Of a stretch of 32,000 nucleotides of DNA, positions 10,037-25,243 are shown piece after piece (within the stretch, counting starts at the first letter, position 1; each line of letters starts with the position of its first letter). The position numbers and the translations under genes were made by a program. The notes beneath the pieces are model-generated. The model saw only the letters and a list, made by a program, of their open reading frames with translations. It was not told the DNA's origin and searched no databases. This DNA comes from Zygophlyctis sp. KS116. Its lineage: Eukaryota; Fungi; Chytridiomycota. The DNA is taken from the NCBI GenBank assembly GCA_054661495.1, contig BAAFSQ010000031.1, positions 1 to 32,000 of the forward strand, read 5' to 3'.

Positions 10037-11307
10037 ATGAAAACAATTTCAATGTTGAAAATGTTGAATTCTTCACAAAACCAAAAGGTTGCATTCTCTA
10101 TTGCTCTGTTTTCTTTAGGTGGTCTGGTATTACTACTATCAGCAGTCATTGTCTATTATACTTTTTATCAGAGTTATATTCCTGCTCTAGTCTCTGATGC
10201 ACCATTGTATTTTGATTATTCTACTTCTTCTCCTCAAGTTTTGGTTCCTGTAAAGTCTTTGGGTCTCATGAATGATCAGAAATATTCTTTTTCTTTAAAA
10301 TTAAAAGTTCCAAATTCACCTCATAATTTTAATTTGGGGAATTTTATGGTGCATTTTAGACTCTTAGACTCTTACAATAATACAATGGCTTGGGCTTCTA
10401 GACCAGGATTAGTCATCTTCAAATCCCCTTTACTCCTAACCCTCAACACTATAATATCTAGTTTTTGGCTCTTGTTGGGCTCCAAATCTGAATCTCAAAA
10501 ACTGGAAATTCCTTTAATGGAACTATATTCTCCAAATTCAAAGTCTTTTTGGGCTCAAATATCATTGTCTACTCAAGACTTACATATATCAAATGCTGCA
10601 TTAGGAATTAAAACTAATTTAAGAGGTCTGCGGTATTTTATGTACGAATGGCCTTTTGTGACTGGACTAATGCTCGTATCATTGATTTTAGCGGCTCAAA
10701 TTATGGTTTTATGGGGAATTTATGAAACTCTTTTAAATCTTAATTCAGTCCCTAATGGTGACAAGGAAAGAAAAATTAGATTAAAAAGGAAAAAGTCTCA
10801 ATTATCAAGGAAATCATCTGCTGAAACTGTAACTGCAAGATTTGATTCTAGTTATGCAAGTCAAAGAACTATAACACCTCCAAATGAAGAGTATTTTTTT
10901 ATAATATTTAATTTATTAGGATAAATAATGAACTAATCAAACCATTTTACCCAGAATCTCCTTCTCCTTGGTCTACTACAAACTCAATATCAAATCTAGA
11001 AAATAAAATAGACTCTGAACCATTGGCAACAATAGGATCAAATATTGAAGACTCTATTGGTGACACGACTATAGAATCTATAGAGGAAATTACTAAACAA
11101 GATCAAGTTGAAGAAAAAGACGTTTCTAAAGGAAAAGTAATTTCAAAAAAAGTATCAAGTTACTCATTCTTTCCTCCTACTGTCGCAGGAGCCTCATCAT
11201 ACTCAATGCCATTTTCTTCCATGTCACCAGAGATTCAAGATGACATTGTGCTCTCTGAAGCTGTTAATTCATGGAGAGAAGGTCTGGATGGCAGCTGGAG
11301 TGAGTAG
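10037..11307 (+). CDS. SEI1: Seipin (lipid droplet biogenesis)
   Basis: TM segment followed by YYTFYQSYIP, LKVPNSPHNFNLGNFMV, GLRYFMYEWP and a second TM; intron 10891-10919 joins the acidic tail. Exact start Met uncertain (10037, 10052 or 10061). Confidence 0.9.
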
Positions 11308-11335
11308 TCTGCGGTCAGAGTAAGGAAAGCTGAAA

Positions 11336-14326
11336 ATGAATTTTATCTTTGCGGAAACTGGTGCTCTAAAGACACTGAATTCAGAGTAAAATTTAGTTTT
11401 TTAAGATTTAAGTGCAATTTATGACGATATTTTTTCCATTTGGAAAATCCCGAAACAGGATCAAATTCTTCTTTGTCAGACTGGGGAGCCGTTCAAAGGG
11501 AATTTTAATGGGAATATTTATGTATTTGATAAACGATCCTTGGTAGAGCCGCGGCAAATCCAGGATTTTGCCAGTAGTTTCAAGTCTCTGCAATATGAGC
11601 CTAAACCTTACACACCAGATCTCTCATTGTTTCAAGATCATTTGAAATTAGCAGAGGATACCTTGTACAAAAGTAAAGAAATGTTGAAATTTATTTTAAT
11701 CACTTGTACAGGTACGTTCTTTAAATTTTTAATCAATTTAGAAAATACTAATATTTATGATGCTTATTCGGCTGCATTTTTAAATCTAAAATCACACGCT
11801 GATAATGTTTGTGTGCATTTCGATCGTTTTCATGCAATTGCACAAAGAGATATGGGAAAACACGCTCTATTGCTAAAGAGTTTTCCTCTGGACATTGAAA
11901 GTCTACATCATATTCCTATTCATGAAAAATTTCAAGATGTTGATAGAAAATTCTTATCTGATACAGTACCGCTTGAAAAATTGGGATCTTGGTTTGAAAA
12001 TTGTCAAAATGCGCATAATTCTTTGGTTAAAAATCTTATAGACTTGACTGAAGAGATCAAATTCATCAAAACAGGCTCTTTAAATGAAGAGAATTCTGGA
12101 CTGGGCTTTGATAAAAAGTATTCTCTAAAAATAGATACAGTTTCTGATAATATTCAAAAGATTCAAGATAAAGTAATTACACTGACAAGGGACGTGCAGA
12201 AAGTTGCCACGGTTATTCAGGATATAAAAACTAAAAAAGTTCAAGTTGAAGAAAAAATCACGGCACTTCAACATTTATATGATATTCATGAAACCCAATA
12301 TATACCTCAAATCTTGGATTCGTATAGCTTAATCAGAGGTACTTATGTAGAAATAGGATCTCAAAAGGTATGTTTATTGAACGCTGAATGTCAGGTTGAC
12401 TTAATGAGAGGCTTATTGAATAAACTAATCATTATATCACATTTACAATCAGTAATTGCCAGTGCATCACCAAAATTAAGTGATATAAGTAATACATTAT
12501 CAATGCATGTTCAAGCTTTTTCTCAACTTTTGCATGTTCATCGAGTAGCTCCTTCTTGGGGAACAGCATTAATTGAAATTGTAAGAAGAAAAGAATATCT
12601 TAAAACGTTCTTTTTAAAAGCAAAAGAAATGGCAGATATTTTAGCAAAATTTAGGACGCTAGAAGAAAAAAGAAGAGAAAACTTTACGAATGAAATATCT
12701 AGATATCTTCCTGAAGGAATAATTCAAGGATTAGATGACACTCTTCCTACATGTGATATCAAGGTCTTGCACGCTATGGATAATTTACCAGACATAACTT
12801 TGGTTGATATTCAAAGTAGGATATTTTAATTCTTATTTCTAGATTTTGAAAAGGTTGTTGGCGGAATTCGCAAATCGATTTCTGATACGAGGCAAGGCCC
12901 AGTTACATTTGATAGTTTATCAAAATTACAAGCAACCATGATGAAATTAACACCTTTAATCTCTGGAATCACTTTGGATTTTGATAGAATACTGTTCAAG
13001 TCTGGTATAATTTATAAACTAATTTTAAAGGACTGTCTGAAAGGCTATCTAAACGAATGGAAGATCAGCAACATACTAGACGGGATGATGTTTCTTTTAG
13101 GGAGGGTACTTTCTCAGTAAAAGTGTAATTAATAGGATCCCCAGAAACCAGAACAGGATCTTTTGGAAGTTCATTTAGTAAACAGTCTCTGGAAGATACA
13201 AACCGTGCATATGAAGAACGTATTAAAAATCTAGAAAAGATTCTCCAATCTAATTATGCAAAAATGGCTTCTAGCAGTCAGGAACACGAAGAAATCATAA
13301 TGCTTCGTCGTCAAGTCTCTGAATTAGAAAAATCCAAAACTGATAATACTATTTGTCTGGAAGAAGCCAAGGCTAAAATTATAGAATTGGAAACAAATCT
13401 TGAAAACAAGACCTCTGATTTAGACAGTATTAAAAGCACTAATCTCTCACTAGAAGAATCCCTAAATCAGGTATACTTACCTACTTGAAATACTTAAAAT
13501 TAGGCAAAAACAGATTTAGAAAATTTAAAAACCACTTGTCAAGACCAAGTCTCAAAACTTTCAAGTCATGAATCTGTAAATTTCCTTTTAAATCTAATTC
13601 TAGCATAACCAAATACTCAAAAACTTTTATGTAAAACTCTTGACTTTTAATGAATCAAAAATGTCAAATTCTCCCATAAATGACTTCAGTTTTGAAAATT
13701 TCCAAAAAGAAATGGATTATACTCTTGACAAATTTCAAAAACTTGAATCTACATGTAAAACTATTGATAATACTAGAGAGAATAATCCTCTCTTGGATAA
13801 AATTGAAAACCTGACACAAAATTTACAATTATCAGAAACTCAAATACAAGACTTGAAAACCAATTATAATAGTGTATTGTCTGAAAACAAAAAACTAGAA
13901 TCTCAATTAGAATCTAAAATCTCAAATTTGAACAATTCTAGAACCATTACATCTAAAATTTCTTTTGAAAAGTAAGTTTACGTTTATTTACTCTAGTTTC
14001 TCTATTGGAGATCTTGTACTTTTCCTACCTACTCGTAGTCCAATTGCATGGGCAGCCTTCAACACCAACAGTCCTCATTATTTCTTATCATTGGAAGAAC
14101 ATGATAATTTCCCTAATCAAATCAGGTAATAAAATATTAATATTAATGTAAGACGCCGGGAATGGATTTTAGGAATAGTTTGTAAAATTCATTCATTTGA
14201 AGCAAAAAAAGGTAATTTCTTTGACTTATCATAGAACATAATCCGTTTGGATTAGGACATGGAACTCTTTTCCATTTGTGTCGAGTGAATTCATTGCCAT
14301 CGTTGAATCTTGGCAATTTAGAATGA
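11336..14326 (+). CDS. ATG11: Autophagy scaffold Atg11 / FIP200
   Basis: IPKQDQILL N-terminus, LIEIVRRKEY, YEERIKNLEKIL, and C-terminal claw motifs KISFENFSIGDLVLFLPTR, WAAFN..PHYFL, WILG, NPFGL. Introns 11386-11412, 11712-11741, 12368-12394, 12816-12842, 13005-13030, 13106-13135, 13471-13503, 13576-13603, 13972-13996, 14126-14152, 14212-14234. Confidence 0.9.
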
Positions 14327-15263
14327 TTTTTATATCAAAGATTGTAGATCCATGGATAAATTTAGCATTTGAAGAATACTTGTTCAGACAATCTGTTCCT
14401 AATATATTATTTTTATATAGAAATTCAAATTGTGTCATTATTGGACGAAATCAGAATCCATGGACTGAGACAAATATTAATCTTTTAAATTCATTGCATA
14501 TCCCACTCATTCGAAGAAAGTCTGGCGGTGGAACAGTTTTTCATGATTTGGGAAACACAAATTATTGTTGTATGATGCCAAGAAATGATTTTAAACGATC
14601 GATTGCTGCTAATATGGTTACTAATGCTCTTTTAAATTTAGACATTCCTGCTCAAGTCAATCATCGATTTGATATTGTCATTGATCAGAAAAAGATTTCA
14701 GGAAGTGCATACAAGATTGCAAATAGTAAATCATATCATCATGGGACAATGCTTATAGATACTGATTTAAGGAATTTAAAGAATTTATTAAAACCAATGG
14801 TAATTTTTATATTTTTTAATTTTAGAATTGGAATATAGAGTCAAAGGGCGTATCTAGTTTTAGATCTCCAGTGACTAGATTAAGAGAATATTCATTAACA
14901 ATTGATCATTCTCCATTTTGTGAATCAGTCATAAAGGAATATTGTAAAATTAATAATCTTTTCTTGACTCCAAAATACTTTACAATGGAGGAATTTAGTA
15001 AAAATTCAGAAATACAAAAATATCATGATGAATTGAAATCTTGGGATTGGACGTTTGGACAAACTCCTAGTTTTACTCAAAAGATTGATAAAATTAGTAA
15101 AAATCATAAATTTCAACTTGTACTATCAGTTAATCACGGTCTAATCAGTGATATTCATTCTGAAAGTATAGATTCAAAAGATATAGATTCAAAAGATATA
15201 GATGACTTAAAAGAGAAATGGATTGATTCTAGATATGAAGATTGTATCAAACATTTGATTTGA
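14323..15263 (+). CDS. AIM22: Lipoate-protein ligase A / lipoyltransferase (LplA/Aim22/LIPT1 family)
   Basis: DPWINLAFEE, VIIGRNQNPW, RRKSGGGTVFHDLGN, KISGSA, HHGTML, SWDWTFGQTP; intron 14800-14825; first in-frame ATG at 14323. Confidence 0.92.
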
Positions 15264-15323
15264 ATTATCTTTTTTGATAAACGTTTTTTTAGATTCGGAC
15301 AAGTTTTGTTTTTCTTGTTTTAA

Positions 15324-16257
15324 ATGAAGATCTTGGAGATTATACCAACAGATATTGTTTTATTAATTCTTGAAAAATGTACAGTACAGACTCTAGCAAG
15401 ACTAAGATTAACATGTAAAGCTCTAAATGATCTCTACTTTTCCCCAAGTTTATGGAAAATACTTGTAATTTCAGACTGTGGGCCGCATCTACCGTTTGTA
15501 TTGAAATTAGTAGAAAAGACTCAATGGGGAATCAGAAAAATAATCGCTTCTGAAATTAGAATGGAATTAATCTCTAAACTCTTTAAAACGAGTGCCACAG
15601 ACGTGCGTTTACTAAACATTTCTGAATTCAAATCTCTTGAAATTAACAAGTCTATACAACGATTAGATTTGCATTCTTCTTCATTAACTCCAATTACTAA
15701 TTTTACTCTAAATGTTGGTTCAAATCTGGCTGAAATTCATTTGTTATTTCAAATATCTACTGAAATGTTGGATGAATTGGCAAAGTGTTTAAATTTACGG
15801 ATTCTGACTCTAGGGAATTGTTTTCAAATTTCTAATCTGGATCTTTCAAGATTTCTTAAAAAATATGGGAAATGGGACTATGTAGCGTTATTAGGAGCTA
15901 ATAATATAACCGATGCAGATTTGGTAGCGATCTCTAATCTTGAAATTGTAAATTTAATTCTTCATTCTTGTAATTTAATTACTGATGATGGAATTTCTGA
16001 ATTAACACATTGTAAAACTTTAGAATGGATAAAGGTTATTAAATGTCGGGGATTGACTCTTGGTGCATTTGCTAACACGGGGTTTTCAAGTACATTAGAG
16101 TGTTTAATGAAATATCCAGACTTTGTAACTGGTAATTTTTTGATTTTAATAATCTTATCGCATCTTGAAATTAAATATTATAGGATTGGGAATGTCCTTT
16201 AAAAAGTCATGTGTATCAACAATGACGGAATCCGTCATCTCTACAGAAACTTGTTAA
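15324..16257 (+). CDS. F-box / leucine-rich repeat protein
   Basis: F-box IPTDIVLLILEKC..LRLTCKAL..LW; cysteine-type LRRs (NCFQISN, CNLITDDGI, CRGLT). Probable 52-nt intron 16132-16183; unspliced stop would be at 16202. Confidence 0.8.
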
Positions 16258-16275
16258 AATTCCGATAATAATAAA

Positions 16276-17327
16276 ATGGATAAGCAGGAAATCAGATTGA
16301 TTATGAGTTCCTTTTATGATCCAATTGCTAGAAATAACATACATCCTGCGGCATTTGAAAATCTAGAGTTTACATTGTCCGATGGTAAATTTATAAAATT
16401 CGGACGTCCGATAAGAGGAGCAGAAGAAGATAAGGCTGATAATTTGGCTTGGTTCAAGTCGAAAGTTGTTAGTAGAAATCATGCTGAATGTTGGATGAAG
16501 AATGGTACTGTGTATGTCAAAGATTCTGGATCCTCAAGTGGAACATTTCTTAATGGCATGCGTCTCTCTCCAGGAGGTAATATTCAATTATTTTAATTAA
16601 AGGTAAACTCTCTCGGCCTTATCCATTAAAAGATGGGGATGTTATTCAACTTGGCGTAGATTATCAAGGAAGGCCAGAAGGTAATATTTTATAAAACTTA
16701 AAATCAGACATCTTTAAAGCAGTCATCATCAAAATCAATCTATTTTCATCTCAAGCTAGCATTTACAGTCGACCATGTGGAAATACTTTTGGGTAAGTAA
16801 AGTTTCAATACAACCACAATTTCTAGGCAAAGCCAAAAGAATATGTTGAATTCTTTCTAACCATTAGATTCCGAAAAGCACTTCAATCACTTCTCACAGC
16901 TTCAAATCCATTCTCTACAGGCACGCAAGACGAATCACAAACTGTAGATTGTTGCATCTGCCTATCAGGAATAGGTCCCTTTCAAGCATTATTCTTGTCA
17001 CCATGCTCACACTGCTTTCATTACAAGTGCGTCAAAAATATTCTCTCAGAATCAGGATTAATGTTTCCATGCCCAGTTTGTCGACAGGTGGCAAATTTAG
17101 AAGCCAGCGTATCAATGGAAAGTTTGGTGGAAACATTTGATGCTGAATCAACCAGCTCCAAAGAAGAACATCCATTAGAGAATACAACAGAGTTTCAAAT
17201 CGACACAAAATCTTGCAAATTTACAACATCAAAAGGTTCTTCTCTCTTTTTAGAAGAAGGGTTAACTGTCACGACAGAGCAGAATATATTCCCAAAAGAA
17301 GAGATAACTGATGATATGGTTGAGTGA
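16276..17327 (+). CDS. DMA1: FHA-RING E3 ubiquitin ligase (Dma1/Chf family)
   Basis: FHA motifs FGR, FKSKVVSRNHAE, DSGSSSGTFLNG, LKDGDVIQLGVDY; RING DCCICL..QALFLSPCSHCFHYKC..FPCPVCRQVANLEA. Introns 16577-16602, 16681-16707, 16793-16867. Confidence 0.92.
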
Positions 17328-17348
17328 GTGGGGTTGGTAGATTAGGAG

Positions 17349-17564
17349 ATGAAAAATGATGGCAAATACATTTTCTTTGGAATTGCAGTATTTGTTTTTG
17401 TGATTGCAGCAATGAGTACATTGGCTTCCAACTCTAGATATTATGCAAGGAGAGGCCGTTATCCAAAATCTCCATTTAGAAGGAAAGGCAAAGGAGTTAA
17501 AAGCATTCGCAGCAAAAAAAGATTTTCAAGAGGACCCTATTTGCCCCCCATAACCAAACTATAG
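17349..17564 (+). CDS. Small single-pass membrane protein with highly basic tail (71 aa)
   Basis: ATG-initiated ORF that fills the DMA1-WDR59 gap; one hydrophobic helix followed by an R/K-rich tail. No family recognised. Confidence 0.5.
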   Translation: MKNDGKYIFFGIAVFVFVIAAMSTLASNSRYYARRGRYPKSPFRRKGKGVKSIRSKKRFSRGPYLPPITKL

Positions 17565-20500
17565 CTTGCAATAACATCCACATCCAGAAGGACAAACATT
17601 ATGATTCTTAAACCACTCTTGATAATGATGGACATGACCTCCATGTTGGCATTTTGAGCAAAATGCAATCATTTTATGACATGATATCTGGCAAATACAG
17701 CATCTTAAAGTTTTAGACTCTGAACAGACCATGCATTTAGATGAATCAAGGGGTATATTTGATCCACACTGTTGACATTCAACTTGAATACCTAATATAT
17801 CAGAAATTATATTTACCCATTTTAAATTCATCCTGAGCGGCAGGAGTATCAAATATATGCAATTGTTTTAAAATATATGCTCTTTGATACCACAACCCCC
17901 ACATTTGAAGGCATTCTGCATACCGATAACGGAAGCAAAGTCCCGCGTAAAATCTAGACATGTCATTTACCAATTTTCCATCCTGATCAATTGATTTTTC
18001 AAAAAGATTCAGCAAATGAGCTGATAAAAACTGATTATAGACTTTAACTACCATTCCTGATTCAACCTCGATTGAATTTCGTACGGCAGCTGCATATGAT
18101 AGATTATTCTTTGGCATATCATGACTAATCCCAGACACCAGTTTATTCATTGGATTTACAGCAGCAACTACTGAAACGGCTGAGGAGTAATAAGAAGAAA
18201 TAGAAGACGTCCGAATAGCGCCCGTAGAATTTGCACGAGGCAAGATGGCCTGCCGATCTGTAATTGTGATGGAAGTTGGTATAATAGATTTTGTGGTAGT
18301 GTAAGATCTCGAAATTCCTTCCGGAGATAAAGATACTTTTTGAGATGTAGTATTATTAGTAACTATTGGAATAAAGGGTTGGTTTTTATCGGCATATATT
18401 TTCTCTATATTTTGCCTCTAAGAGATCACTTTCAAAACGCTTACCTTTATCATCAAAAGGCTCATCATCGCAAGTGTCTGCAAATCACGATGTTTCTCTA
18501 AGAAAGAAAATCTAAAATGAGATATTCAAAGCCTACATTTCCTGGAACACAACTGAACAAACGTAAGCACTACTGGCAGGACACGCTTCCTCCACATACC
18601 GGATAGATCCTTTGTCTGTTTTTTCTTTAGAATAGCTATCATCAAAAATATTGGATAACAGCATCCATATTTTCGCAAGGTCTAAGCGCCCCATACTTTG
18701 AGCAGCATCGCCAAATAATAGACATGCTTTTTTTGAATTGCCGAATTCTGAGATGTTTTTGTTCATTTTTTGAGCCATCTGTTCTGAAATTGGATCTAAT
18801 ACTATATTTTGATCTATGTAAACGTTTGCCCCGAAGAAGGATCGAGCTGAGTCGATGCTCTCCTTTTGTTCGATTGTTTCGTTTAAAGGCCGGTCATCAT
18901 GCGCTAGCGATGCTGATCTTCTCCTATTCCCATCCAAATCAATGTGTCCCGAGCCAATATCAATAGATTGCTGCTCAGAATTATACTCCTTTAGTGATGG
19001 TATATCCACCGACGAAGTGGATAAAGTGGTTCTACGGTTAAATTTTGGCAGTTCCTTTATTTCAGAGGGAATGGTGATGTATTTGGTATTGCTCCTTGAT
19101 TTTGATTGATATATCTGCTTGAGAAAATTTCCATTGCTATAGTTGTTTTCTGAGTTATTTCTTGAATATCGCTGTAATGAATAATGTGAATTTGGACGCC
19201 AAGATATGCTCTCTTCTTCCTCCTCTTCTTCTTCATCGAGCCAATAATTTGCGGTATTCCCCTGATGATACCCAGAGTTTTCCGATGAATAAGAATGACT
19301 TGCCTGAACTAAACCTGTCCGCGAAAGTAGAAAAGATCTATAACTCTCGTACATATCATATGTTTTAGGATATGTGACAAATTTTTGAGATTGAAGTACA
19401 GGCTGTTGATATTTGTTGGTTAATGTATGAGATGCAAATCTTGTCGCTGCGGGATGTGGAAGAATTGAAAAGAAATAAATAAGCTTTCCTATACATCAAA
19501 TAATAAAATAGTACCACCAGAAAAGCAACCTTGACAAATCCTTGGAAAAGGAACGTTAATTTTCTTAACATCTGCAGTGCGCAATGTTTTAGCTGCTATT
19601 TTTTGACTTAAAAGAGATATTTCATTGTCAGATGAATCCGAATCCAGCTCCACATCTTCAATAAATACATCACTAGTATCTTTTTTTTGAACAGGCGTTT
19701 CAATATCATTAAGAAAGTAATTTACTTTTTCCATTAAAGTATTTTCTGTTTCGGCCTGTTCCGTATCAATGTTCAAAACGTTTCCCTTTACAAGAAATTG
19801 AATCAGGGATTCCAAATGCAAAAGACTATGCGATTCTAGGAGGAGCTTGTTTAGATTATAGTACATATATCGAATAACTTCCAAGTCCAAATTTGATTCT
19901 GATAAATCAAAATGTGAAACCAAAAAAGAATTTGGAGTTGACTTGAAGAAAATCAAACAAGAAAACCCAAATGGCGTCGTCATAATTTTCAAGTGGTTAA
20001 TATCAGTTATAAATATTCTAAAATCTTATATAAAATGAAATACCTATATTGAAGCGGCTCATCTCCAACTTTTTCAAAAGCCACATTCTTAAACTTTCTT
20101 TCAATACTTTTTAGCAGTTCCTCCAGTTTACTTAAATTGTCTGAAACTTCTTTTAGTTTGGGAATTGTATTCAAATCTCTTATTTGATGTAAAATATTCC
20201 CCTCAACAGATACGTCTGAATTTCTAGATTCATCTTAAAAGATTAGAATTTAAGACTTACCATGTTTTGAAAATCCCAGGAACGATTTTTCAGGAACCTT
20301 TGGAAAACTACCAGTTCTAGTTACAACTAAATTTTGGGGATCTACCGGCCAAAGTCTTAAATGCTGATCTTTAGACCAAGTCACTAATTGAAATTGATCG
20401 CCCCTTTTCCTCCAAACAAATTCTTTAACAGTATCTGTATGTCCAGAAAACACGATTAAAGGCTCTAAAAAAGAATTACAATCCCACAAATAGAGATTAT

Positions 20501-21319
20501 TATCTTTTCGTTGAGGCAAACTAACAATATAATTTCCAAAAGGAGTAAATCTTGCTCTCCATACTGGAAATCCAGTTTCAATCGCTGCTAAACATGTCCT
20601 TGGTTGAGAATAATCCCAAAACTTTTTTATAACCTTTTAAAAAATACCTTTATAAAACCATCTTGAGCACAAGTCACCAATTCCTTTTCTTCTCTTGGCG
20701 ACCAATCTATCCCATAAACCTTATTCATATGTGCCGTAATTATAGTAAGTGGAGAACTACCCTTTCTACCCTTTAATTTCACGTCTATAATACCTTAAAT
20801 CCCAAATTCTAGCATCAGTATCATGAGATGATGCCATTATAAATTCATTTTTAGGATTAAATTTGACTTGACTCCCTCCTGTCCAAGCTCCTAAACTAGA
20901 AATTGGTTTCTGTAGAGAGACTCTTAAATCCCAAATATGAATATATGAATCATTAGATATTGAAGCTAATATATCAGAATGAGCAATTGACCAATGAAAA
21001 TCATTAATTGCTCTTGTATGACCGGGTAAAATATATTGTACCGCTCCCTGCCCAACGTTCCAAATCAATATTGTCTGATTACTCTATTATTACAATTGAA
21101 AATTATTACCGTTGAAGCTATGACATCCCTTTTACTTGCATGCGGATTCCACTGAACATCACAAACATCCCATTTAGAATAATGACTTAAAAACCGAGCA
21201 TCGTCAAGTGGATTATTAAGATCGATAATATACAATCCTCTCTTTGCCGCTAAACAAGCTTGATCCCCTTCTGGACTAATACTCAATGAAGTTACAGGAT
21301 AATTTAAGTTAAAATTCAT
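17559..21319 (-). CDS. WDR59: GATOR2/SEACAT subunit WDR59 / Sea3 (Mtc5)
   Basis: N-terminal WD40 (GLYIIDL, DVQWNPH, GHTRAINDFHW, PVWRARFTPFG, LVTWSKD), VPFPRIC..FS, DLQTLAM, and C-terminal zinc finger CQHGGH..CPSGCGC. Introns 21084-21109, 20766-20793, 20622-20647, 20234-20260, 20018-20043, 19489-19514, 18512-18536, 18418-18444, 17792-17816. Confidence 0.92.
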
Positions 21320-21626
21320 TCTAAAACTTTTTCAGTTGCAGAGAGAAATCGACCTCTGTCTCCTCGCTGTCTCTTGACTGCATGCATATGTCTGGATTCA
21401 TGTCTATATTTCTAATATTAGCTATAATCTAAAAAATACAGAATTTCCAGATTCCATTTCTAAACGAGCACGTTGTTCCCGTCTCTTCATGATTCGATGA
21501 TATTGTTTTGCTGAAAATCAATGGACAAAAATTACCATTGACAAATAATGGTTCGTTTGGAGTCTTTGGAAAGTTTATAAACTTTTATTATCTTTTTTAA
21601 AAACAAACCTCATTGATATAGTCCAT
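21316..21626 (-). CDS. HAP2: Minimal CCAAT-binding factor subunit HAP2 / NF-YA (76 aa), absent from the ORF track
   Basis: Exons 21626-21609, 21581-21536, 21510-21440 and 21411-21316 (introns 27, 25, 28 nt) give MDYINEFINFPKTPNEPLFVNAKQYHRIMKRREQRARLEMESGNSKYRHESRHMHAVKRQRGDRGRFLSATEKVLE*, containing the NF-YA signatures VNAKQYHRI.KRR and HESRH.HA..R.RG..GRF. Confidence 0.92.
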
Positions 21627-21628
21627 TC

Positions 21629-24600
21629 TTAACTCGAGTATCCAGACTTTCGTATCTCTGCCAATTTATAACGCGCAGTCTGAAGAGCTTTTTCAATTTC
21701 TAAAATTGAGACTTGGGCATCCATTTCCTGAACCTTGTAATCATGTCGTCCAAGTTTCTCTACTTCAGATAGGGCTTTTGCTTCAGCTATAGATTTGGAG
21801 GCGGATTTGGCTGCCTTGACTAAAAGGGCCGTTGCCTCTCGGACTGCTACTGCTGCTGCTTCCAGTTTGTCTTGGGTTTGGGAAAATGGGACAGCTTTTA
21901 CTCTTGAAGCTGCGACAAGTTGAGTGGTTGCTACAGAGACTTCTTGTGCGGCAACTACCAGCTGTTCCCAAGAATGTGTATCGTGTATAAGACCATCAGC
22001 AACTTCAACTAAATATGTGGTAGCTACAGAGACAGATTTAGCTGCAGATATTAAACCTTCTGTCCACTTATTATTCTTCTTGTAAAATGCAACATTAGAT
22101 GAATTTCCACGGCCCTGAGCGACAATTTCTCTTTCAGATGCAGTTGCACATTTTATCAAGTTTGAAATTGCATTTGTAATTGCCATGGCTGCTTCAAGGA
22201 TTGCAGAGTGGACTTGAATTTGTTGAGGTCTAGATATCAAGCTAGCTAAATGTGCTGCAGCTTCTTCTATAGCTTTTGCGGCTGATCGCATTTCTCTTTC
22301 TACTGCATCTCCAAGTTCTGATTCCAACAATTTTAGATTATCATCTTTGGGAGAAATTTTCTCAACTACTAATCCTAGAGTTTTAAAAGAGTTTTGAGCT
22401 TCTTGTACTCCCTTTTCAATAAATTCTGGTCGGTAGGAAGAATGGAGAGTTGCTAGACGAGAACTTTGGCCATTTATAAAGATATTTCTGCAGTCCAAAA
22501 CACAAGTCTTCAAACTTTTTAATAATTCTTCTGAAACAGCATCATCTTTCGCAAGGCGATTGACTCCTTTTACATTGTTAGTGAGCTGTACAACTGATCC
22601 TAAAAATGCAGTCATTGGTGTAATAACATCCTTTGGATCTCCTCCTTGCGAGACCTTAATTATAGAGTTACCAAAATCAGAGCTGGAAGATTGAGCCTTT
22701 TCTAAGACCGAAAGGACAAATTCTGGTGAAGCTCCTTGATTTCCAAGGTAAGATGGTGAATCAATTTGTATCAATAGTTCATCAAAAGTACTTGCAGAGC
22801 CATTCAAGATTCGATCTAACATTAGACATTTAAGGAAGCGCACCAAGTAATAAGCTCAACTCTGAATTATGATCTAATTGCATTTTTTGTAATTTTGAAC
22901 TTATTTCATTGCTCATACTATCAGCATTCTAAAGATTAGCGCAAATAAAAAAATACCTGCTGTTGTTGCGCAAAAGCTAAAATGGTTTGGTCCAAACTAG
23001 CCTTTAGAACTTCTATTTCTTCAGCGTGTGCCTAAAAATTTACGGAGAAATATTTACTAAATCTGCACGTTGGGAATCGTCTTTCGCAAGCTCAAGTTGT
23101 CGTCTAAGCGCTTCTATTTCAGATATTTTACCCTGTCTGTCAATAATACTAAATTACATTGAGAGAATTTTCAAAAGCCATCTTTTCATTGTTAAATCTA
23201 GAAACCAAACCAGCGACCTCTGCACCCTTTGAATTTGAAATATCCGACAAAGATGATTGTGCGTCTCGTAGCTCCTTCCGTAATTGACCTATTTCCTCTG
23301 CGTGTTGGTTTCGAAGCCTCTCGGCCTCATTTCTAAAACGATCGCGCTCAACAAGTAAATCAGTCATTTCATCTGATTTCAACTTTGATATAAAAGTTTG
23401 ATAAATAAGTACCTTAAGTTCTGTCCTTATTCTTTCTAATTCTGCTTTTGATTTATGTGAATCATTTAAGTCAGCATCCTTTTTGTCCTTTAATGATGTT
23501 AGAAGGTCGATATGTTCTTTACGAAGTTGGGAATAAAGCTTTGCTAAAGCTTCATACTTTTGTTTCCAAATATTTACTTCCTCTATCATATCAATATTAT
23601 AAGCGCACCTGTAAGCCTCCTAATTGTTTCGTCATCATTTTTAAGCTTAAAACTATTCAGCTGATCTTCTAATGCTCTCATTTTTGAAAGATAATCCTGA
23701 ATAGTATTTCGGTCAGTCAAAGATTGCATTCGCGCATTTTCAAGTTGTGATTGCGCATCAACTAACCGAGACTGCATTAGCTGGAACTCTAATTGAGCAG
23801 CTTGATTAGCACTTTGCGCTTGTTGCTGCATCATCCGGATTCGCTCTTCTTCCATTCTTAGTTTTTCAGCATTTTGACGTTTCAACTCCTCTTCTCTTTG
23901 ATGCTGCAATTCCAACTCCCGCATTTTTTGTAACTCTTGCTGCCTTTGTAGTTCTTGCTGCCTCTTTAACTCTTGTTGCTTTAAAAGAGCTTGCTGCCTT
24001 TGTCTCTCTAATTCTTCCTGTTCCTTTTGCAATTGCTGTTGAAGCTACTCTGTTTAAAAAAAGTAAAGTACCCTCTCTTGTTCCTTCAAAAATTCATCAT
24101 CATCCTCATCCTTTTGTTCTTTTTCCAAGCTTTGAACTTTTGGCTTTCTGACTGGTGGTCCTTTTACTAAAAAATCTGGAGGATCAGCCGACAAGTGAGG
24201 AATTGTAATTAGAGATGTCAAATATCTCAACGCTTTACAATCTTCATAAAACGCATAAAGTTGATTATGAGAATTTTTGAATAATACCCGTAGAGGAGAC
24301 AAAACTTCAACAGATCCAATAACTTTACCATTAAAGAACCCAAAAGATACCTTGATGCATTCCTGTTAACATTGAAACCAAAAATTCATAAACCCCATAA
24401 CTTTCTTCTACCAGTGGAACTAGAGCCGATATTCTTGCTTCATTGTTACTTGTTGCTCTTAAACTAGAAAAAACATATTTTTGTAAAACATCAATTTTCC
24501 CCAACATTTCAAGTAATTCCTCAATAGTATGATAACCTTCATTAGGATCCTGTAATCCTTTAATTGAAATATATTCATCATAATCAAAATTTCCAGAGAA

Positions 24601-25052
24601 TTCAGGATGTAAAGCATGATAATCAAGTTTACTAACCAAAAATTGTACGTACGCCTTTATCAGATCTGAATACCCCCCATAATGCCCCGCAGTCCTTGAG
24701 AGCGACTGTAAAAATGGAGTTTCTCTAATTCCTTCCTTTAGAACCTAGAATTTAGAAAACTTAAATATACGCCTGGATGACCCTGTCTAACAACTTTATG
24801 GAGCATAATCATTAATTTAAATACAACGACTTCGTCGCCTAAAGCCGGAAAAGACTTTATTGCTCTCCAAAAGCTCCCTGCGCCTCTAATATCCCAAGTG
24901 TAAAGCATGCATCCACGGACATGTTTCTGCTTTGGCGCTGATTCCTCTGTAGAAAGGGCTTTACGGATATGAACGGCCAAATCTTCTTCCATCTTTAATG
25001 TACCAATCGCAGGCCTCTGTCCCTGTGACCCTGGATACTGTTGATTATACAT
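21629..25052 (-). CDS. SLA2: Endocytic adaptor Sla2/End4 (HIP1R): ANTH, coiled coil, I/LWEQ (THATCH)
   Basis: ESAPKQKHVRGCMLYTWD, RISALVPLVEESYGVY, WKQKYEALAKLYSQLR, FYKKNNKWTEGLISAAK, QLVAASRVKA. Introns 24745-24770, 24323-24350, 24045-24071, 23583-23608, 23383-23412, 23133-23157, 23032-23057, 22929-22956, 22816-22843. Confidence 0.95.
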
Positions 25053-25243
25053 GAGTTATAAATCTAAAAACCCAAAACTACTCCACCAAAAGTCCGAGTT
25101 TTGTTCGGAGATTTTCTTTCAAAAAATAAAAAAAATCTAGTGCACCTCCATGTTTGCCACTGTATTACTAAAATCTAAATTTATTAAACGTTTTAAAATC
25201 TTGAGTTTTTCCATTTTATGAAAAGTGAAGATTTACAAAATTT

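Follow-up and report, generated by a model that had tools for sequence, protein, structure and literature searches.

How are three genes of unrelated function expressed when next to no DNA is left between them? The question is raised by SLA2, HAP2 and WDR59, which follow one another on the minus strand of a 32,000-nucleotide (nt) stretch of the chytrid Zygophlyctis sp. KS116 (NCBI GenBank assembly GCA_054661495.1, contig BAAFSQ010000031.1, positions 1 to 32,000; hereafter the window). A first-pass annotation had described them as an operon-like tri-gene cassette with no private promoter, untranslated region (UTR) or polyadenylation (poly(A)) space, and had offered two readings, a polycistronic RNA or promoters and terminators embedded in neighbouring exons. 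The geometry, lack of private space included, is correct. Direct reading gives the SLA2 stop TAA (21631-21629), then GA, then the HAP2 ATG (21626-21624); the WDR59 ATG (21319-21317) overlaps the HAP2 TGA (21318-21316) as ATGA, and an in-frame TGA lies at 21334-21332, five codons 5' of the WDR59 ATG. Embedded promoters and terminators found support at SLA2-HAP2 and, statistically, in a genome sample, whereas the polycistronic cassette did not. We consider it probable that these are three separately transcribed nuclear genes, interlocked as monocistronic units through genome compaction in a clade of chytrids.

Each gene is recognisable from its Pfam domains, ANTH and I/LWEQ for SLA2, CBFB_NFYA for HAP2 and zf-RING_16/zinc_ribbon_16 for WDR59, and the assembly, of 12.7 Mb in 1175 contigs, has no NF-YA match other than HAP2. 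The exon structure of HAP2 is kept in relatives, and a predicted 26-nt SLA2 intron (23583-23608) was found spliced out in one lake metatranscriptome contig. An independent assembly (L048), 96.7% identical, has the identical +2/-4 geometry, and an assembly artefact was rejected on L048 and L049. The WDR59 start position is the same in four relatives. For the TTTAG before its ATG, the best splice donor at normal intron distance scores -2.0, against a 1st percentile of 1.6 for modelled donors. A further upstream WDR59 exon was therefore rejected.

Gene models came from a self-training gene finder, with splice matrices seeded from the introns of this locus and retrained on a 232-kb sample (the window together with another 200 kb of the genome); spliced models were matched exon by exon, and 45 loci from distant fungi were left out of the comparisons. 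Gene starts are ab initio, first exons shorter than 12 nt being beyond the finder's reach. The sample is 88% coding and 5.7% intron, and holds 145 genes with about three introns each, their lengths peaking at 25-28 nt (range 24-30 nt). The closest named matches of SLA2 are chytrids, at 51-57% identity across a full exon. In a tree of the SLA2 C-terminus the window falls within a long-branched clade of environmental sequences (100/100). This clade is nested in a group to which three environmental relatives, all less compact, also belong, among unresolved chytrid sequences.

The history of the SLA2-HAP2 junction can be followed in these relatives. In the less compact L052 and L074 the two genes are also adjacent, about 180-190 nt apart, and the HAP2 N-terminus is longer; in the compact clade the spacers are 2, 2, 2, 1, 1 and 0 nt and the short first HAP2 exon is unchanged. 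This comparison shows erosion of an ancestral spacer of about 180-190 nt to 0-2 nt. Since the spacer frame varies (0/1/2), stop read-through and an SLA2-HAP2 fusion were rejected. HAP2 (21316-21626) is itself pared to 76 amino acids (aa), having lost the glutamine-rich N-terminus of L052 and L074.

Two short elements at this junction point to separate transcription. The word CGCG occurs at 2.3 per kb in promoters and 0.24 per kb in coding sequence, and not at all in introns or convergent spacers. In all six compact-clade loci 47-49 nt separate it from the end of the SLA2 stop, which places it about 50 nt 5' of the HAP2 ATG; it is built by either of two synonymous routes, ACC-GCG or GCG-CGN (GCG makes up 11% of alanine codons), and in five of the six it is unique within the last 900 nt of SLA2. 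Three loosely spaced relatives lack it at that codon, two of them having CGCG in the spacer instead, and the 11-mer that bears it here recurs on contig 3, within a divergent spacer of 33 nt. Across the SLA2 tail as a whole, synonymous conservation is not raised, the GCG codon and the CpG count alone standing out. The second element is TAATAAA in HAP2 intron 1, again present in all six loci, where AATAAA follows the SLA2 stop at a distance of 32-39 nt (39 in the window). AATAAA occurs in just 10 of 476 introns (2%), four orthologous SLA2 introns have no 5-mer common to five species, and intron and synonymous positions around both elements have diverged among the six loci. SLA2 and HAP2 thus look like separate, interlocked transcription units, and we infer from these comparisons that CGCG is a HAP2 promoter element and TAATAAA the SLA2 poly(A) signal. 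The HAP2 promoter would now lie within the last codons of SLA2, its CGCG held by synonymous choices, and the SLA2 mRNA would extend into HAP2 and be cleaved after AATAAA in HAP2 intron 1, where the signal bears no coding cost.

Statistically, the genome sample points to similar displacement. Promoter 5-mers were ranked automatically by enrichment in intergenic promoter over coding DNA. Once this locus was excluded, they occurred in the final 20 codons of 14 upstream genes from tight tandem pairs at 2.1-2.8 times the synonymous-resampling expectation (p 0.008 for clusters, 0.001 for overlaps), compared with 0.7-0.8 times in convergent and 1.2-1.3 times in loose tandem tails. A first four-motif test was partly post hoc, the tails having already been seen; for the resampling test, the words came from the automatic ranking. 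Of the 16 upstream genes in tight pairs, 5 have AATAAA near the stop, whereas 3.6% of windows in gene bodies contain it (p 2e-4), and it lies near 28 of 123 stops in sense against 13 in antisense, with 3% for coding windows. Promoter words were found in 47 of 77 true promoters, leaving about 40% without, and most 3' ends also lack a poly(A) hexamer. Recurrent words in the sample are ACGCG/CGCGAA, GTCCGAA, AGGGC and GACCTA, the first of which we take to be MCB (MluI cell-cycle box)/E2F-like, and the ratio of observed to expected CpG is 1.1 in promoters and a depleted 0.6 in coding sequence.

Gene spacing argues in the same direction. The 137 neighbour pairs (71 tandem, 33 convergent, 33 divergent) fit random orientation (p 0.73), with median gaps of 69, 26 and 130 nt, respectively. 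Tight junctions are commonplace in this genome, since 8 of the 71 tandem gaps are +4 nt or less, and four lie at -4 or -1. At ten convergent pairs the gap is no more than +7 nt, reaching down to -9 nt, and six divergent gaps measure 33-39 nt. Polycistrony is therefore an inadequate account: no single mRNA can serve both genes of a convergent or divergent pair, and UTRs and signals must therefore, if the models are right, overlie the coding sequence of neighbours. The six divergent spacers of 33-39 nt (L054-L073), some with GCCCTA/TAGGGC or CGCG, are probably minimal bidirectional promoters with very short 5' UTRs. The annotation had also suggested looking for a spike at -4/-1 among same-strand distances. 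None appeared: four overlaps were seen against 2.7-4.1 expected after correction for the ease with which ATGA or TRATG forms, in 71 tandem junctions whose low power leaves a modest excess possible. Likewise, an ATG sits at -4/-1 of 8 of 65 tandem stops and 6 of 58 convergent stops (p 0.78). With a conserved poly(A)-type signal of SLA2's own, random orientation and no such spike, the description as an operon-like cassette is not borne out.

Table 1. Features of the SLA2-HAP2-WDR59 locus, in window coordinates
Feature	Position	Strand	Basis
SLA2/HIP1 (ANTH ... I/LWEQ), 1059 aa, 9 introns of 25-30 nt	21629..25052	-	Pfam, gene finder, one RNA-spliced intron
Spacer GA, 2 nt, SLA2 stop to HAP2 start	21627..21628	-	direct reading, relatives
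HAP2/NF-YA, 76 aa, four exons; introns 21582-21608, 21511-21535, 21412-21439	21316..21626	-	Pfam, gene finder
ATGA shared by the HAP2 stop and the WDR59 start (-4)	21316..21319	-	direct reading; also L077/L078
WDR59/Sea3/Mtc5 (WD40 ... RING), 1174 aa, 9 introns	17559..21319	-	Pfam, gene finder
Divergent spacer, 191 nt, holding the SLA2 promoter; words TCCGAA, TCGGAC	25053..25243		promoter-word content
Promoter-type word CGCG within the Thr-Ala-Arg codons of SLA2, 15 codons from the stop; putative HAP2 promoter element	21672..21675		six of six compact-clade loci
TAATAAA in HAP2 intron 1; putative SLA2 poly(A) signal	21584..21590	-	six of six compact-clade loci

At HAP2-WDR59 the same interlocking probably holds, with WDR59 predicted to start inside HAP2 and HAP2 to end inside WDR59. 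The ATGA overlap would be the end point of spacer erosion, passively kept. Its retention depends on only one base, the A that follows the WDR59 ATG, together with a HAP2 tail free of frameshifts, so that its persistence is weak evidence of selection. Multi-gene read-through RNAs probably exist, but would not be the main templates for the downstream proteins.

Several points weigh against separate transcription of all three genes. TAAT in HAP2 intron 1 could instead act as a branch point. The gene models are ab initio and cover 1.8% of the genome, mostly from the largest contigs, and the six compact-clade loci are kin rather than independent (L077 and L050 are 90% identical). The lake metatranscriptome run yielded 6% of words and three short contigs, none of them at either junction. 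At HAP2-WDR59, no promoter word was found in the last 20 codons of HAP2 and no conserved AATAAA in the first 420 nt of WDR59, where L077 has none of eight variants. The ATGA overlap, moreover, recurs in a second species: L077/L078 have it at -4 as in the window, with SLA2 79% and WDR59 66% identical and with different flanking codons (VLE*/MNF and KNL*/MSSF). An earlier view from L047 and L075 that the overlap was species-specific was overturned by L077.

The recurrence of ATGA in a second species with a different tail, and the lack of a conserved HAP2 terminator or of a promoter word near the WDR59 ATG, keep in play another reading, in which SLA2 is separate and HAP2-WDR59 is a cellular bicistron transcribed from the promoter in the SLA2 tail, with HAP2 translated first and WDR59 made at a low level by termination-reinitiation at AUGA. 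We judge this unlikely, though it is the best of the alternatives. The first open reading frame (ORF1) is short, at 76 codons, and WDR59 is presumably a subunit of SEACAT/GATOR2 for which low output might suffice; yeast can be induced to reinitiate on bicistronic mRNAs (PMC11952965). L047 can be read in its favour as well. There the former HAP2 tail persists behind a 214-nt insertion (2273-2486) flanked by 9-nt direct repeats (ATTTGTATC); unspliced, HAP2 ends 81-159 nt before WDR59, and with the insertion spliced out at sites that are both weak (donor 1.3, acceptor 1.2) the ATGA overlap would be restored. Since the repeats supply GT and AG, the insertion could be a new, transposon-derived intron.

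Other evidence speaks against the bicistron. In L075 the HAP2-WDR59 spacer is at least 24 nt (167 unspliced) and contains promoter words and AATAAA. No stable or shared structure was found 5' of the junction (minimum free energy z 0.5), and UGGGA, the motif of the termination upstream ribosome-binding site (TURBS), is missing within 90 nt upstream at both junctions. The victorivirus-type coupling to which the annotation had alluded does have its AUGA here, but the required H-type pseudoknot is neither above chance nor shared: in a crude stem search, 44% of shuffles equalled the best score in each of the two species, with different stems. True promoters, too, often lack the promoter words (about 40% of them), and there is no -4/-1 excess in the sample. 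The window also has a second ATGA overlap, between the ATG11 stop and the lipoyltransferase start (14323-14326, plus strand) and in the same TTTAGAATGA context; in relatives this gap is +23 (L077) and +10 nt (L079). In every relative the lipoyltransferase begins directly at its conserved core (MIFISK), and a mitochondrial presequence is not obvious. The shared 10-mer TTTAGAATGA was set aside as a coincidence, being lost in relatives at both junctions, and three more TTAGAATGA matches in the 232 kb lie at no modelled gene junction.

DENR and factors of nonsense-mediated decay (NMD) are present, a further point against the bicistron, and the presence of DENR led us to reject a loss of 40S recycling factors. 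A search of the assembly, which has gaps and in which short exons can be missed, found no match to the Pre-PUA domain of MCT-1/Tma20 and eIF2D/Tma64. There are only two SUI1 matches in the assembly, and eIF2D may be missing. That a spliced chytrid mRNA makes a second protein by AUGA reinitiation without a viral pseudoknot, and that some of the probably hundreds of overlaps in this genome do likewise, is unlikely.

Very unlikely, in our view, is a reading in which TTTAG or TTAAG before the ATGs are splice acceptors (of a 5'-UTR intron, a missed exon or spliced-leader trans-splicing), so that the downstream genes would be cut from a longer precursor. The sequence is indeed TTTAGAATGA at both ATGA junctions of the window and TTAAGAATG at the SLA2 junction, and the acceptor before WDR59 has a score of 3.3, but the AG is lost in L047, L050, L051, L053, L075 and L077, acceptor-like sites precede 29% of ATGs against 22-42% of controls, no donor is in range, and skipping of exon 4 yields no in-frame fusion. 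The least probable reading is a tricistronic SLA2-HAP2-WDR59 operon with serially coupled translation, which we hold to be highly improbable in spite of spacers of 2 nt or less in six of six loci and SLA2-HAP2 adjacency in relatives at 67-68% identity: a conserved AATAAA follows SLA2 and CGCG precedes HAP2, the 70 AUGs of SLA2 rule out leaky scanning, functions are unrelated and orientation is random, and, a stop codon followed by many exon junctions being a likely NMD target, the SLA2 stop in such an RNA, with 12 exon junctions downstream of it in a cell whose assembly has UPF1, UPF2 and Mago, would likely be one too.

Some further observations concern the surroundings. The nine-gene block from seipin to SLA2 (10037-25052) is collinear in L077 at 66-79% protein identity, with spacers of -4 to 419 nt. 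The stop of WDR59 and that of a convergent gene of 60 aa are 5 nt apart (17553-17559); in L077 the distance is 6 nt, and in L047 the two genes overlap by 4 nt. In L053 (2040-2141) HAP2 exon 4 leaves the NF-YA motif after two residues, which may reflect one more insertion, use of an alternative exon or misassembly at the end of the contig.

How, then, does the locus compare with known systems? Bacterial coupled operons share with it the ATGA overlap and the 0-2-nt spacers, but not the spliceosomal introns, random orientation, unrelated functions and lack of a -4/-1 excess. Victoriviruses and hypoviruses reinitiate at AUGA or UAAUG, and Helminthosporium victoriae virus 190S (HvV190S) needs an upstream H-type pseudoknot (PMC6631646). 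An AUGA in a fungal cell is likewise found at HAP2-WDR59, in two species, though not at SLA2-HAP2; no pseudoknot exceeds chance or is common to both species, and unlike calicivirus TURBS reinitiation neither junction has UGGGA. Green algal bicistrons work by leaky scanning past an AUG-depleted ORF1 with a weak Kozak context (PMC7896298, PMC11892635). The size of HAP2 and its closeness to WDR59 fit such a short ORF1 just before ORF2, but HAP2 contains 9 AUGs and SLA2 70, and the HAP2 ATG has A, the commonest base there, at -3. In contrast to spliced-leader operons, unpaired acceptors before downstream ATGs are neither enriched nor conserved. At the level of sequence, then, the locus does not pass as a bacterial-type operon, as a case of victorivirus or TURBS reinitiation, as an algal bicistron with leaky scanning or as a spliced-leader operon. 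In Agaricomycetes, long reads have revealed tandem genes that are read through into polycistronic transcripts and yet are also independently transcribed, the upstream gene being without termination elements (PMC4503453), whereas SLA2 here keeps a conserved one. If true, the HAP2-WDR59 bicistron would be a case of cellular AUGA reinitiation.

Microsporidia and nucleomorphs, whose genomes are reduced and mostly intron-poor, are known to have promoters and terminators displaced into the genes next to them. The nearest parallel to the present locus is that of the microsporidia Antonospora locustae and Encephalitozoon cuniculi, in which multi-gene transcription overlaps and control elements have shifted into adjacent genes as intergenic DNA shrank (PMC2803860). 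AAUAAA near stops, very short 5' UTRs and divergent genes sharing a 35-bp spacer (PMC2803860) have their likeness here, as does severe intergenic loss in all orientations (88% coding; medians 69/26/130 nt). Termination signals inside the downstream gene (SLA2 and the tight genes) and promoter elements inside the upstream gene (CGCG and the tight tails) are indicated by sequence alone, and were not found for HAP2 and WDR59, respectively. The promoter words differ, being CGCG, GTCCGA and AGGGC here and CCC/AAATTT in microsporidia (PMC2803860), and overlapping coding sequences, very rare in E. cuniculi (PMC2803860), contrast with the 8 of 71 tandem gaps of +4 nt or less in this genome. The literature searched, in which most subscription journals were not included, gave no account of how genomes in this clade are organised. 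Three further features set this system apart and make it informative. The displacement at SLA2-HAP2 is readable in comparative sequence, as a promoter word at synonymous sites and, within the first intron of the neighbour, a poly(A)-type signal, and the less compact relatives preserve the earlier state. An intron appears to house the poly(A) signal of a neighbour, so that competition between HAP2 intron 1 splicing and SLA2 3' cleavage becomes directly testable. And where the microsporidia are intron-poor reduced parasites, this chytrid clade appears to reach a similar interlocking while keeping about three introns per gene.

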